NCBI GenBank assembly: GCA_965112735.1
Contig: OZ218960.1
Span: 806,001 to 870,000, forward strand
Origin: Phaeosaccion multiseriatum
Taxonomy: Eukaryota; Protista; Ochrophyta, other classes
DNA length: 64,000 nt
Direction of reading: 5' to 3'
The notes beneath the pieces are model-generated. The model saw only the letters and a program-made list of their open reading frames with translations, did no database searches and was not told the DNA's origin. The position numbers and the translations under genes are program-made. Each line of letters starts with the position of its first letter. Position 1 is the stretch's first letter. Of this stretch, positions 2,521 through 54,300 are shown in pieces.

Positions 2521-3551
2521 CTGGGAGCAGCAGCAGCAGCAGCAGCAGCAGCAGCAGCAGCAGCAGCAGTTGGTGATACATAAGCTGCAGCAGAAACAGC
2601 AGCAGGAGCGGCAGGAAGAGGAAAGCATAAGATATATGCAATAGGAGCAATTAGATCCCTTGGGAGTCCATATGGGGATAAAACGAGGGAAGTGAAGAGT
2701 AGAGGGGTTTTGCCCTTCCCCCCTCCACTACATGTCATCTACAATTGACACACTATTACACCAAGGAAGGACGCTTCCCTTTTGGAAGCTGTGGTGAGGC
2801 GAAGGGGCTTTGTTGAGGTATGATTTGATGTCTTTTTTTCCCTTTTCTTTCCTCTCTTTGATTATTACTATTAAAAAATAATTGATCTATTGATTGAAGC
2901 TGTGTTGCGGTATAATTGAAGGAAGGAAGAATGTCAAAAAGATTTCCTTTAGTAAGCTGTGGTGAGGCGAGTGGAGTGATCGCCTCGCAGTCGTCATGTG
3001 AGTGTCTGAGTCAAGTAAGTCACAAAAGAAGTGTAGCCAAATGGCAAGGTCTCCCCCTGCGCCTGGTTGGATTTGTAGGTAAGTACTATTAGATTGATTT
3101 CAGTTTCAATCAAGTGACCGCGGAGGAGTTGCAGCTTGGTCGGGCGCGGGGGGTGGGCTGTGACTCTCAAAGTCGAGACGTGAGAAGGGACACAAAAAGA
3201 AGGAGACAGGGGAGGGGAGGGTGCAAGCAGCGGATGGAGGGGAGTATCTTTGTGACTACTGACTGAAGTGAAGTCAGTCAGTCAGTACCCCCCTTTCCCA
3301 CCCCCGCTCCTCCACCACCACCCCACCTCCTAACCCTTTGTTTTCGTCCATTCTTCTCAAGGCTCTGCAAGCAGAGAGAGCCATTTGCCAATTTCCCCCC
3401 ATATTGTAACAAAACAAAACGCCGTCATTAACACATTCAACCGCTCCACAAAGCCCTTAGTTCCATCACTGAACACCATCACAGGCTACACACGTAATAC
3501 TTACTAATACTCCCAACTACTCCACCGTCTACCCCGAACGCATTCGTCTCG

Positions 3552-3724
3552 ATGCATCTGTTCTGCCACTGCCTGGCTTTCTCTTGGCCCCCTCTTGGCC
3601 CCCTCTTGCGACCCAAAAGTAAAGAGGAAGGCATCCTATGTCGTCGGCCTCCTCTTCGCAGCGGAGGCACGTCAGCTTTGGGAGGAAAACATTAGCCAGG
3701 GAAGCGTCACACCATCCCATGCAC
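3552..3724 (-). promoter_or_regulatory. Candidate SECIS element with a very long apical extension in the msrA 3' UTR
   Basis: Minus strand GUGAC (3710-3706), 12 nt GCUUCCCUGGCU, AA, ~113 nt insert, AGCCAGGCAGUGGC, AGAA (3564-3561); outer GUGCAU/AUGCAU pairing. Folded by eye only. Confidence 0.35.
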
Positions 3725-3804
3725 ACAGCCCTCCTCCTCCTCACGCGCTCTTCCGTCTGACCATCCCGTCCACACATCTCTCCTCCTCCCCGCGTACTCT
3801 TTCT

Positions 3805-50971: not shown

Positions 50972-51256
50972 CTGTCCATTACAAGGAGTGACGGTCCCAA
51001 AAACGAAAGGAAGTGTTCATAAGAAGGAGTGACTGTTCATAAATGGAGGACTATCCATTAAAAGGAGATTGTCCCTAACAAGGAGTGACTGTCCAAAAAG
51101 GAAGAGATTATCCATGACAAGGAGTGACTGTCCATAAGAAGGAGGGAATGACTGCACTGACTGCGCTACTCTGACCACCACAAGGGAGGAGGAGGAGAAG
51201 GAGGAGGAGCAGTGACTGGCTGCACTACTCCGACAATCACGAGAGGACGTGACTCC
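50960..51256. repeat. Degenerate ~20-bp tandem repeat (AAGGAGTGACTGTCCAT...) starting at the MAPK stop codon
   Basis: Several visible copies of ggagtgactgtcc; the last codons (cactacgccgacaatcac) recur near 51165 and 51223. Confidence 0.8.
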
Positions 51257-51365
51257 AACGATCACAGAAGTGCGAGAGACAGCACTATTGGACTCCGAAA
51301 GGGAAGATGAGGCGGCGTAGCTTTATCACTCTCCCGTTCATATATATATATTATACTTCGTAGTA

Positions 51366-54300
51366 CTATCCATCACCTTCTTCGGCTGTTGCTGCTACCG
51401 GTGCTGCTACTGCTGCCACTACTGCTGCTGCTGCTGCTGCTGGTGATGGTGGTGATGGTGGTGATGGTGGTGGTGGTGATGGTGGTGGTACTGCTGCCTT
51501 CGCTGCCGGAACTCGTGCTCTTTCGGGCGATTTCGGAGGGGGCGAAAGTAGAGGGGGGATGGAGGAGGAGATGGAGCCGAAGAGAGGCCTCTCGTTAGGC
51601 GGGCTACAACTTCTACTCCTCCTCCTACAGCGGCGTTCTGTCGTGGACCCATTGCCATCAGAAGCTGTCGATCCTTCCACTGCCCCTTCTATTGCTCCTG
51701 CTCCTGCCCCTGCTGAAGCAGCCTCAGCGGCTCCTGGTGCCTCAGCCGTTTCATCTGCTGCTGCTGCTGCTGCTGCTGCTGCTGAAGGCTGAGTATTGGG
51801 GAGAACCAGGAGGTCCCTGGTGTTGAGAAACGACGACACGGAAACTAGCCCCTCTTCTTGGGTCTGGATGGGCGAAATGTGCGCGTCGTTGTGGACATTG
51901 ACCATAATGGGCGATGTGAAGTGCTGCTGCTGCTGCTTGGAGCTGCTCCGTCCAGAGCGAGGAGGGGTCCTCGGGGGGTCTACACCTACACGCTTCACCT
52001 CAGCAGAGCTCCGCTGGCCGTGTTCGTCCAGGACCTACAATTGTAAGGGGAGAGAGAGAGAGACACACACACAAAGAGAGAGAGAGAGAGAGAGAGAAGG
52101 GGGTGTGGGTGCTTCAACAGCGGCCGTCTCAGCTGCGACAGCTTGCTCTTTCCTACGACTTTGTTGTCTGCATCCCTTCCTCTCTCTTCCCTCTCTCTCC
52201 TCCCTCGCCCCCTCCCTCTCTGTAGCCCCCTCTCTCCACCCCCTCTTCTCTCTCCATACCGTATCCCCCCCCCCGGCCCCCAAAAGCCCGTCGGGTCAGG
52301 CCCTCCTCCTCCTCCTCCTCCTCCTCCTCCTCCTCCTCCGTCCATCCACTGCCATCCTCCTCCTTGACCCTCTTACCAGGTCCAGTAGCTCAATCCCTTC
52401 CTCGCCTTGCTCCGGATGCTCGCCATCCACTTCCATTCCGCCGTAGCCGTAACCGGCATCTCCGTACATGTAACCGTCACCGTCTTCGGACTCCCTGCTC
52501 TCCCCCACTTCTGGCGGTCGGCGCTGCGGCTGTGGTTGACGTTTTAACCTTCCTTTGCGCTTGCTGTGACCACCTCCCTCGCTCGCGCTCCCATCTGGGT
52601 GGAGAGACTGATAGGAGGTTTGCCTTCTCCTGAGAAGGGAGAAAAGACGCGCGCGAGGAGAATGGAGGCGAATCGGGGGCGGTGGAGAGGGAGGAGTTGG
52701 AGGGGCAGAGAAGACGAATGAGGGAGTAGACTTGGGGGGGGGGGACAAGAGACAGAGACAGGGAGGGAGGGAGCAGTGGAGAGATGCTGGCGCAGAGAGA
52801 GAGAACAGATGCACCGTATGGTTGTACATTGTGTAGCATCTCATTCTTGTTTCAATTCTTTTCTTTCCCGGTGCTGCTGCATACTTGCTCCATTACTTAC
52901 TTTTCCCGTCCCTTCTTGGCGGCATGTTGTAACAAATCAGTCTTCCACAGCACGCACACAAGCCCTGCTGCGAAGATAGCGATGATCCACAGCTGGAGCA
53001 GTTGGTGATACAGCAGCATTGCATCGCATAGCATTGCGTAGAGCAAGCGTAGCACATTAGTTGGTCAGTGACTGATTAACTGACACCAGGTAGTGGCTGA
53101 CTGACAGGCTGACTGACTGATTGACTGACTGACTGATTGACTGACTGACTGACTGACTGACTGACCGACTGAGCGACTGACTGACTGACTGACTGACTGA
53201 CTGACTGATTGACTGATTGATTGACTGAATGACAGACTGATTGACTGACTGATTGACTGATTGACTGACTGACAGGCTAACTGACTGATTGACTGACTGA
53301 TTGACTGATTGACTGACTGACTGACTAAATGACACCAGGTACTGACCAGCAAGAGCACGTCTGTCGCCGAGAAGACTGTGGCAGCGACCGCCACCACCTC
53401 CACATCCTCCGACTGCTCGATCTGCTCGATCTGAGACGACGTCAAATTCACCTGTTTACAGATGGCGCAACAGGCGAGGGGGGGGGAGTACAACACGCGG
53501 GGGGAGGTGGTGCGGGGAGGGCTTGGACCTTGCTACTGGCTGATTGCTTGCTTTCTTCGTCCCTCCCTCCCCTCCCTGCCCTCCCCTCTTCTCCCCTCCC
53601 TCCCCTCCCCTCCCTCCCTCCCTCCCTCCTTCCCCCACCATTACCTTGTAGTAATGCGAAGCGTTGATGGCAATGTAGGCCACCTCGTCGAGACAGTCAA
53701 AGTACTTGGCAAAGTCACTGAGACTGTTAATGTACGAGTACTTCTTCTCCTGCAGGCACACTTGCAATCCCCGATAGTACGCAACGACTTCGGTGTGCGC
53801 ATCGGTGGCACTTCTGTCGTTGTCGTCCTCGTTGGCTCTGGCACTGATAACCCTGTCACCTCCACCACCACCATCACCACCACCACCACCACCACCACCA
53901 CTAACAGCACCAGTACCACCATCACGGCGCCCTCCTAGCTGCCTTCTCGCGAAGCTCGTCTGCTCCGTCGCTACCGTACCCTCCTCGTCTGAAGGAGGGC
54001 GGCCTGCCGCTGGGAGCTCCGTACCCATACGCTCCTGCATGGCCTCGTGCCTCTCCTCGCAGCCCCTCTCGCGTGCTTTCTCGCTGCTGCCAACGCCGCC
54101 ACCGCCGCCTCTATCCATCTCGCCTCGAGCTCGATGTCGATGTGCGCGACTTTCCTTGCCCATAGGACTGCCCAAGTCAGCGGTGGCCGGCGGTGCTGCC
54201 AGTGCCCGCTTTCCCCCTCTCTCTGGGAGCATTATATTTATCACCTCCGGGGGGCTCTGAGTGTAAATGACAATCTGACATTGGGTGGAGGGGTGGATGG

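Follow-up and report, generated by a model that had tools for sequence, protein, structure and literature searches.

How does one short DNA word come to stand, nearly unchanged, in exons, introns and spacers of a eukaryotic genome? The question is raised by a 64-kb window of the alga Phaeosaccion multiseriatum (contig OZ218960.1, positions 806,001 to 870,000; "the window" denotes this whole stretch), in which the initial annotation had noticed the highly iterated 15-mer GCAGTTGGTGATACA. The word is discussed below as this 15-mer, as the 17-mer GCAGTTGGTGATACAGC and as its 9-nucleotide (nt) core, TTGGTGATA. Our tentative answer, to which we assign a probability of about 0.4, is that the word is a real, genome-wide and lineage-restricted micro-insertion that spreads by copy and paste, as opposed to a binding site that arose in situ by evolution.

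Abundance of the word in the window and in the genome

Counting on both strands of the window yielded nine exact occurrences of the 15-mer, seven on the plus and two on the minus strand, with starts at 2566, 11364, 11813, 26299, 45847, 46120 and 52998 (+) and at 43438 and 47862 (-); none of 100 dinucleotide-preserving shuffles contained a match. Eight of the copies extend to ...ACAG and seven to the exact 17-mer. Our recount thus reproduces the nine, eight and seven occurrences of the 15-, 16- and 17-mer given by the initial annotation, whose core coordinates are shifted by one base relative to the observed starts. The variants that it listed are real as well (6550, 7026(-), 39699, 41792(-), 46440 and 49400), and an additional degenerate copy is found at 39676. 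Allowing up to two mismatches to the 17-mer gives 13 sites, compared with 0.02 expected, and the 9-nt core occurs 12 times, compared with 0.5 expected. Copies and variants together amount to ~17 per 64 kb and to zero in the shuffles, and forms intermediate between exact copies and non-copies are few. The G+C content of the window is 57%, and microsatellites are very abundant in it; when these and the CACCACAACCA satellite are set aside, the word tops the census of repeated k-mers. Where the word occurs, its density is fairly even at about one per 4–7 kb, and three stretches of 11–14 kb (PPR, Maf1 and thaumatin-like genes, Crypton) are free of it. The last copy ends at 53014 and none lies past it, in agreement with the earlier observation that the Crypton block is devoid of the word.

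The reality of the word was assessed with contigs of public sequencing runs aligned to positions 45600-48000. Runs X1 and X2 represent one sample and are DNA-like; X5 comes from another sample and another study; a fourth run, X17, contributed no aligned contig. Contigs of the other three runs carry three word copies of this region with zero differences. Those of X5 alone skip the segments 46263-46415 and 47260-47884/6, which have GT..AG ends. Because its contigs skip these two introns, X5, labeled 'DNA?', is transcriptome data, and it yields a gene model for the low-complexity gene of this region. It follows that the copies at 45847, 46120 and 46440 lie in exons and are retained in mRNA. In the bin that holds the word at 45847, the summed contig depth reached 108,054 for X1 (~562 beside it), 27,572 for X2 (117) and 15,994 for X5 (42), i.e. 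192, 235 and 384 times the depth of the adjoining single-copy bins. The loose ends of the contigs begin exactly at the borders of the word and its CAG flank, and their consensus, which represents other genomic copies, is CAG-rich on both sides. The contigs listed include ones from other loci at single-copy depth, and some contigs hold two or three copies of the word spaced 4–35 nt apart. From the depth excess and the loose ends at the word borders it follows that hundreds of other loci hold the word with CAG flanks. Enrichment elsewhere in the genome, on which the initial annotation had made its interpretation depend, is thus borne out by a contig depth of 190–380 times that of single-copy DNA.

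Outside this genome the word is found at chance level. Prokaryote genomes totaling 596 Gb contain the 17-mer 102 times, always singly, compared with ~69 occurrences expected by chance, and metagenome contigs contain it 120 times, again only as single copies and in no case with CAG flanks. Thirty-four viral contigs (IMG/VR) have the exact 17-mer, 24 of which represent one AT-rich phage gene with near-identical flanks; this match is a chance identity unrelated to the alga. None of the prokaryote, metagenome or viral matches came from this organism or a relative. Such chance-level counts exclude an adapter as well as an element of wide distribution. When a 31-mer index was queried with (CAG)n followed by the word, three of four sampled words were detected in differently labeled runs, including metatranscriptomes and an 'algae metagenome'; these runs may simply contain this alga at low coverage. 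A protein search with the peptide region encoded by the word (AVGDT) gave nothing at E≤10. The protein collection lacks a close relative of the alga, since the best homologs of the Maf1 protein encoded in the window, from Florenciella (Dictyochophyceae) and Phaeomonas, are only 57% identical. These homologs set the organism among the ochrophyte algae. In 8.4 million papers and preprints, the 15-mer and its reverse complement are absent, the 11-mer occurs only within unrelated primers, and topical literature searches returned no description of such a word.

Anatomy of the word and its putative GCAGC target

The anatomy of the word, its orientation rule and its target statistics are matters of direct observation, as are its reality and its abundance. 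In an alignment of the 12 core copies, AGTTGGTGATACA is invariant in 11–12 of the 12, and the full consensus reads A-GCAG-TTGGTGATA-CAGC-AG, with conservation grading outward on both sides into CAG-like triplets. The triplets flanking the core are CAG...CAG in nine copies and GAG...GAG in one (46440), and position -5 is occupied by A in 11 of the 12. The copies at 46440 and 49400 share the left flank ACGAG in place of AGCAG and, judged by this alignment, look like an inherited subfamily. The word has no dyad symmetry, and its 9-nt core is not palindromic. Folded as single-stranded DNA, copies that lie outside CAG tracts score no better than shuffles (z = 0.06 to 0.24), and copies within tracts fold solely via CAG/CAG pairing.

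No larger element surrounds the word in the window, and the initial annotation was right in describing it as devoid of longer shared flanks and terminal inverted repeats. Alignment of 12–17 copies revealed no shared flank beyond the CAG-like triplets; BLAST of the flanks, which sought 'empty-site' paralogs, returned CAG low complexity only; and half-sites are at chance level, with neither an element bounded by two halves nor a full-length element in the window. Inverted ends are absent from the copy-bearing introns, and the word bears no relation to the termini of the window's Crypton. Rfam gave no match at gathering score in the window and no family recurring at E≤10 around three copies, and no tRNA was found in the window.

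An introner was considered as the source of the word and rejected, given that the copy-bearing introns lack inverted ends. None of the known vehicles that were tried fits: neither a piece of a transposon nor a miniature inverted-repeat element, neither a truncated retro-copy nor a palindromic element, and no RNA gene.

The frequent embedding of the word in CAG tracts, pointed out earlier, is real when compared with random positions. Four of the nine exact copies adjoin a perfect (CAG)≥3 tract, in each case with the word on the CAG strand, and only 5.6% of the window is equally near such a tract (P about 0.001). A reverse-oriented insert between the same flanks occurs zero times in the window; with respect to CAG as opposed to CTG, the word keeps one orientation. 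The perfect copies at 26299, 43436, 47860 and 52998 have as flanks just GCAG and CAGC, that is, 4–8 nt of CAG-like sequence. The word can be read as G-CAG-TTGGTGATA-CAG-C, which corresponds to a net gain of 12 nt within the pentamer GCAGC. This pentamer is present at 565 sites in the window, several-fold above the expectation from base composition, and 43% of these sites lie within perfect CAG tracts. With GCAGC as the target, four of nine copies within tracts are readily expected (P = 0.59), and the bases abutting the 17-mer (A at -1, AG at +1/+2) equal the background at GCAGC sites. Because the availability of GCAGC predicts it, the tract association needs no special affinity for long tracts; most long CAG tracts in the window are without the word.

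Coding context and catalog of copies

One of the six frames of the word has a stop codon (TGA) and the other five are stop-free; a 12-nt gain preserves the reading frame. The exonic copies, which RNA retains, use the Ala or the Gln register of the word and read AVGDT at 11364, 45847 and 46120 and (Q/E)LVI(Q/E) otherwise, with the rare-looking codons TTG and ATA. The translations confirm the two reading frames proposed by the initial annotation (AVGDTA at 11365, 45848 and 46121; QLVIQ at 11814). Its broader claim, that the word is independent of protein coding, is likewise upheld by the use of two frames, by exons kept in mRNA together with RNA-verified introns, and by the presence of the word on either strand relative to transcription. 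The host proteins of exonic copies are of low complexity, rich in Ala, Gln and Ser, and without a Pfam domain. Zero copies are found in the PPR, Maf1 and thaumatin-like genes and in the Crypton; absence from genes with ordinary domains is the pattern expected for insertions retained where they are harmless. All copies and variants are compiled in the table.

Copies and variants of the word in the window, with strand and local context
Feature	Position	Strand	Context
Copy GCAGTTGGTGATACATA	2566..2582	+	3' end of (CAG)14 tract, right after the stop of open reading frame (ORF) 1906-2520
Variant copy GCAGTTGGTGtTACAGC, 1 mismatch	6550..6566	+	
Variant copy	7026..7042	-	Core TTGGTGATA exact; flanks CTG and CAC
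Variant copy, 2 mismatches	10320..10336	-	Antisense in 1098-aa ORF; may be a chance look-alike in CAG-rich DNA
Exact 17-mer	11364..11380	+	Long ORF 9819-13115, translated AVGDTA
Exact 17-mer	11813..11829	+	ORF 9819-13115, other codon register of the word: QLVIQ
Exact 17-mer	26299..26315	+	Non-coding-looking DNA, without CAG tract
Two degenerate copies 27 nt apart	39676..39715	+	Cores TTGaTGATA and TTGtTGATA; CAG/CAA/TAG tract
Variant copy, 2 mismatches	41792..41808	-	CA-rich DNA; ~33 nt downstream of putative minus-strand 5' splice site
Exact 17-mer	43436..43452	-	Without CAG tract
Exact 17-mer	45847..45863	+	Exon, AVGDTA; unchanged in X5 RNA contig; pile-up of hundreds of foreign contigs
Exact 17-mer	46120..46136	+	After (CAG)11 tract, same exon as the 45847 copy, AVGDTA
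Subfamily copy ACGAGTTGGTGATAGAG	46440..46456	+	RNA-supported exon, translated ELVIE
16/17 copy	47860..47876	-	Antisense in RNA-verified intron 47260-47886; 10-26 nt upstream of 3' splice site
Subfamily copy ACGAGTTGGTGATACAAG	49400..49416	+	Intron, 16 nt past the 5' splice site ending a protein-kinase exon
Exact 17-mer	52998..53014	+	Without long CAG tract; inside CLN5-like gene span

The three intronic copies at 49400, 41792 and 47860 sit 10–33 nt from a splice site, two of them in sense orientation at +16 and +33 of a 5' site and the third in antisense orientation at -10 of a 3' site; their closeness to splice sites is probably due to chance. At 45938-45946, GCA-TTGGTGGTA-GCA lies in a GCA/AGC tract and is translated SIGGS. 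This match may represent a copy that has decayed and lost its stop, standing in the tract's Ser register, or it may be due to chance.

Three genes of the window without the word encode a PPR-repeat protein (28299-30932), a homolog of Maf1, the repressor of RNA polymerase III transcription (31492-32631), and a protein with a thaumatin-like C-terminal domain (34149-35720). A MAPK/CDK-like protein-kinase gene (WYRAPELIL...) spans 48737-50137 and is split by a CT-rich intron of ~450 nt that consists almost entirely of simple repeats. The microsatellite load of the genome is extreme: perfect or near-perfect tetranucleotide arrays comprise (CTTC)31 at 45469-45592, (GTCT)29 at 47324-47439 and (TCTG)103 at 18707-19120, and one such array is translated within an ORF as (SFLP)n. 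The 11-bp satellite CACCACAACCA forms ~47 copies at 1374-1898, and similar CA-rich DNA fills the putative intron near 41.8 kb (41700-41830).

Possible origins of the word

Whatever its function, the word requires a copying process, because 17 near-invariant positions in hundreds of copies exceed what repeated point mutation can provide. Judged by sequence comparison, the seven exact 17-mers, the 12 exact cores where 0.5 are expected and the scarcity of intermediates argue for copying and not for convergence, as does the inherited-looking left flank ACGAG that two copies have in common. An origin by insertion, and the kind of mechanism behind it, we infer as follows. One short template would have been written into each site offering G-CAG-C, each time adding 12 nt net (TTGGTGATA and a second CAG); in an equivalent reading, a patch of 17–21 nt would have CAG-like ends that overlap the target. 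Most likely, templated synthesis would have been primed by microhomology where the DNA was nicked or broken, with one abundant short RNA or DNA molecule serving as the template, in formal likeness to healing by telomerase, abortive target-primed reverse transcription and polymerase template switching. Copies would then be neutrally retained where they are harmless, in low-complexity exons, introns and untranslated regions, which may tolerate the word because the gain is a multiple of three and stop-free in five of six frames. CAG tracts would gather copies simply through holding 43% of the GCAGC sites. Among the options offered by the initial annotation, a templated patch written during repair fits best; the long CAG tracts on which that option relied are unnecessary, the availability of GCAGC being sufficient. 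Its view of the word as a signal with a function, by analogy with HIP1, uptake sequences, Chi, CENP-B or Cbs, gains no support from the results.

Several points weigh against an origin by templated micro-insertion. Neither a template, nor a writer enzyme, nor an empty allele was seen, and the sample is one 64-kb window with 9–17 copies. The excess of perfect copies could equally be compatible with purifying selection on a functional site, and the copy at 41792 lies in CA-rich DNA without an obvious GCAGC. Furthermore, the A at position -5 and the ACGAG subfamily suggest, as far as the alignment can tell, that the left flank is part of the copied unit, which renders both the boundaries of the unit and its reading as '12 nt plus duplicated CAG' ambiguous. 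Finally, the templated-insertion pathways that we know of copy nearby or random DNA, and not one universal word.

Could the word be the selected cis-acting site of a sequence-specific protein, for instance a multi-finger, Myb-type or transposase-derived one, with a role in chromosome organization, replication or recombination like that of the CENP-B box, nematode MEX, ciliate Cbs, HIP1 or uptake sequences? The near-invariance of 17 positions, the predominance of perfect over decayed copies, the occurrence on both strands and the fairly even density of ~1 per 4–7 kb where the word is present all speak for such a site, and the left half contains CAGTTG, which may correspond to the Myb-type consensus, CNGTTR. 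Binding sites are, however, usually graded or degenerate, and hundreds of identical 17-mers would still need copying. Moreover, copies lie in coding exons and are clustered in low-complexity genes, three stretches of 11–14 kb are empty, and target availability already predicts the CAG-tract association and the flank statistics. We regard a protein site as unlikely.

About as doubtful is the possibility that the word is the trace of a mobile element, i.e. either the canonical footprint left on excision by a cut-and-paste transposon that duplicates a 3-bp target, CAG, or the extreme 3' tail of a severely 5'-truncated retroelement aimed at CAG-type sites. Some Harbinger elements make CWG duplications. 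The form CAG-TTGGTGATA-CAG and the GAG...GAG at 46440, which resembles a 3-bp target duplication, are in line with a footprint, and a pentamer that looks like a target, together with a constant net length, also suits an element. Yet elements with matching ends are missing from a window that holds 12 cores, and half-sites are as frequent as chance predicts. A footprint derived from inverted ends should be palindromic, which the 9 nt are not, and truncated retro-copies of variable length should in part extend further in the 5' direction, which no copy does; in addition, the Crypton ends are unrelated to the word and the copy-bearing introns are without inverted ends.

A still less probable explanation is that a single interruption arose in a CAG tract and then spread passively among CAG tracts by ectopic gene conversion or template switching. 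It would account for the four of nine exact copies that directly border perfect CAG tracts, each time on the CAG strand, for the CAG-rich loose-end consensus of the other genomic copies and for a length of 9–12 nt that keeps the tract register. The undecayed copies at 26299, 43436, 47860 and 52998 speak against it, as their CAG-like flanks of 4–8 nt are too short for conversion driven by homology, and so does the share of copies within tracts, which is no higher than GCAGC availability, with most long tracts free of the word. A technical artefact, be it an adapter, a primer, or a polishing or assembly error, is extremely improbable: contigs carry the word with zero differences, among them spliced RNA contigs from a second sample and study, the word stands in frame inside ORFs, prokaryote matches are at chance level, always single and never at contig-end hotspots, and a template-switch oligonucleotide resembles the word only loosely (five indels) and lends no support to an artefact. 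The adapter or primer match that the initial annotation had named as a possible objection is thus contradicted both by the spliced RNA contigs of the second study and by the chance-level counts elsewhere.

Several known systems come close to the word and yet differ from it. HIP1, GCGATCGC, is a cyanobacterial word, and DUS/USS are the DNA uptake sequences of Neisseria and Haemophilus. The alga's word shares with these its status as a hyper-abundant, lineage-specific word present on both strands, in coding and non-coding DNA and in tolerated frames, and like them it is over-represented. In contrast, HIP1 and DUS/USS are prokaryotic, measure 8–12 bp and can accumulate through point mutations favored by a drive that is known or suspected (uptake bias, methylation-linked repair), HIP1 being palindromic; the present word belongs to a eukaryote, measures 13–17 nt, is non-palindromic and tied to GCAGC, and is too long for repeated substitution. 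The 12–17-bp words of the CENP-B box, ciliate Cbs and nematode MEX are likewise present in many copies and are recognized by proteins, but they have degenerate positions, are restricted to satellites, to breakage sites or to a single chromosome, and do not occur in exons of unrelated genes. Repetitive extragenic palindromic sequences and bacterial interspersed mosaic elements (REP/BIME) differ from the word, which is not an imperfect palindrome and has no hairpin fold outside tracts.

Among processes that insert DNA, telomerase adds short interstitial telomeric repeats at double-strand breaks. These resemble the word in being short templated inserts without transposon flanks, with microhomology to the template and a duplication-like overlap; the word, however, is not TTAGGG-like and only single units were seen; an origin by telomerase is unlikely. 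Excision footprints of the Tc1/mariner or Sleeping Beauty type are also short scars of fixed length with a duplicated target at many dispersed sites, whereas the word is non-palindromic, has no donor in 64 kb with 12 scars and reaches a copy number far above the usual. Introners range in size from tens of bp to hundreds, possess end structures as well as target duplications, and are removed by splicing; the word, in contrast, is 17 nt long, lacks end structure and stays in mRNA. Insertions by MMBIR, a break-induced replication mediated by microhomology, copy nearby or varied templates, each event being unique, whereas in the alga the same word is written everywhere. Introner elements and miniature inverted-repeat transposable elements of marine protists are described as copy-and-paste DNA that has invaded genes of marine algae by the thousand (bioRxiv 10.1101/2022.06.06.494994), and MMBIR template switching as a source of short templated insertions primed at microhomology (PMC8421209).

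No described counterpart of the word was found; its nearest analogs either belong to prokaryotes (HIP1, uptake sequences) or involve other sequences (telomeric insertions at breaks, transposon footprints). We know of no eukaryotic word of ~17 nt described to occur exactly at hundreds to thousands of exon, intron and spacer sites without a mobile element. Beyond the micro-insertion favored here, the alga might possess an endogenous sequence-writing activity, although we consider this rather unlikely. In such a case, a reverse transcriptase or a polymerase provided with a short template of its own would write a fixed, frame-preserving 12-nt patch at CAG-type sites genome-wide, either as a new, minimal kind of selfish 'micro-retroelement' or as a host system by which unstable CAG tracts are capped or interrupted. 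Should the word be a protein-binding site instead, it would stand as the counterpart, in a eukaryote, of HIP1 or of uptake sequences. If templated writing is true, the word would represent the smallest self-propagating DNA unit known or the product of a natural site-directed 'writer', and either templated case would bear on the evolution of low-complexity coding sequences, the stabilization of CAG tracts and enzymes for genome engineering.

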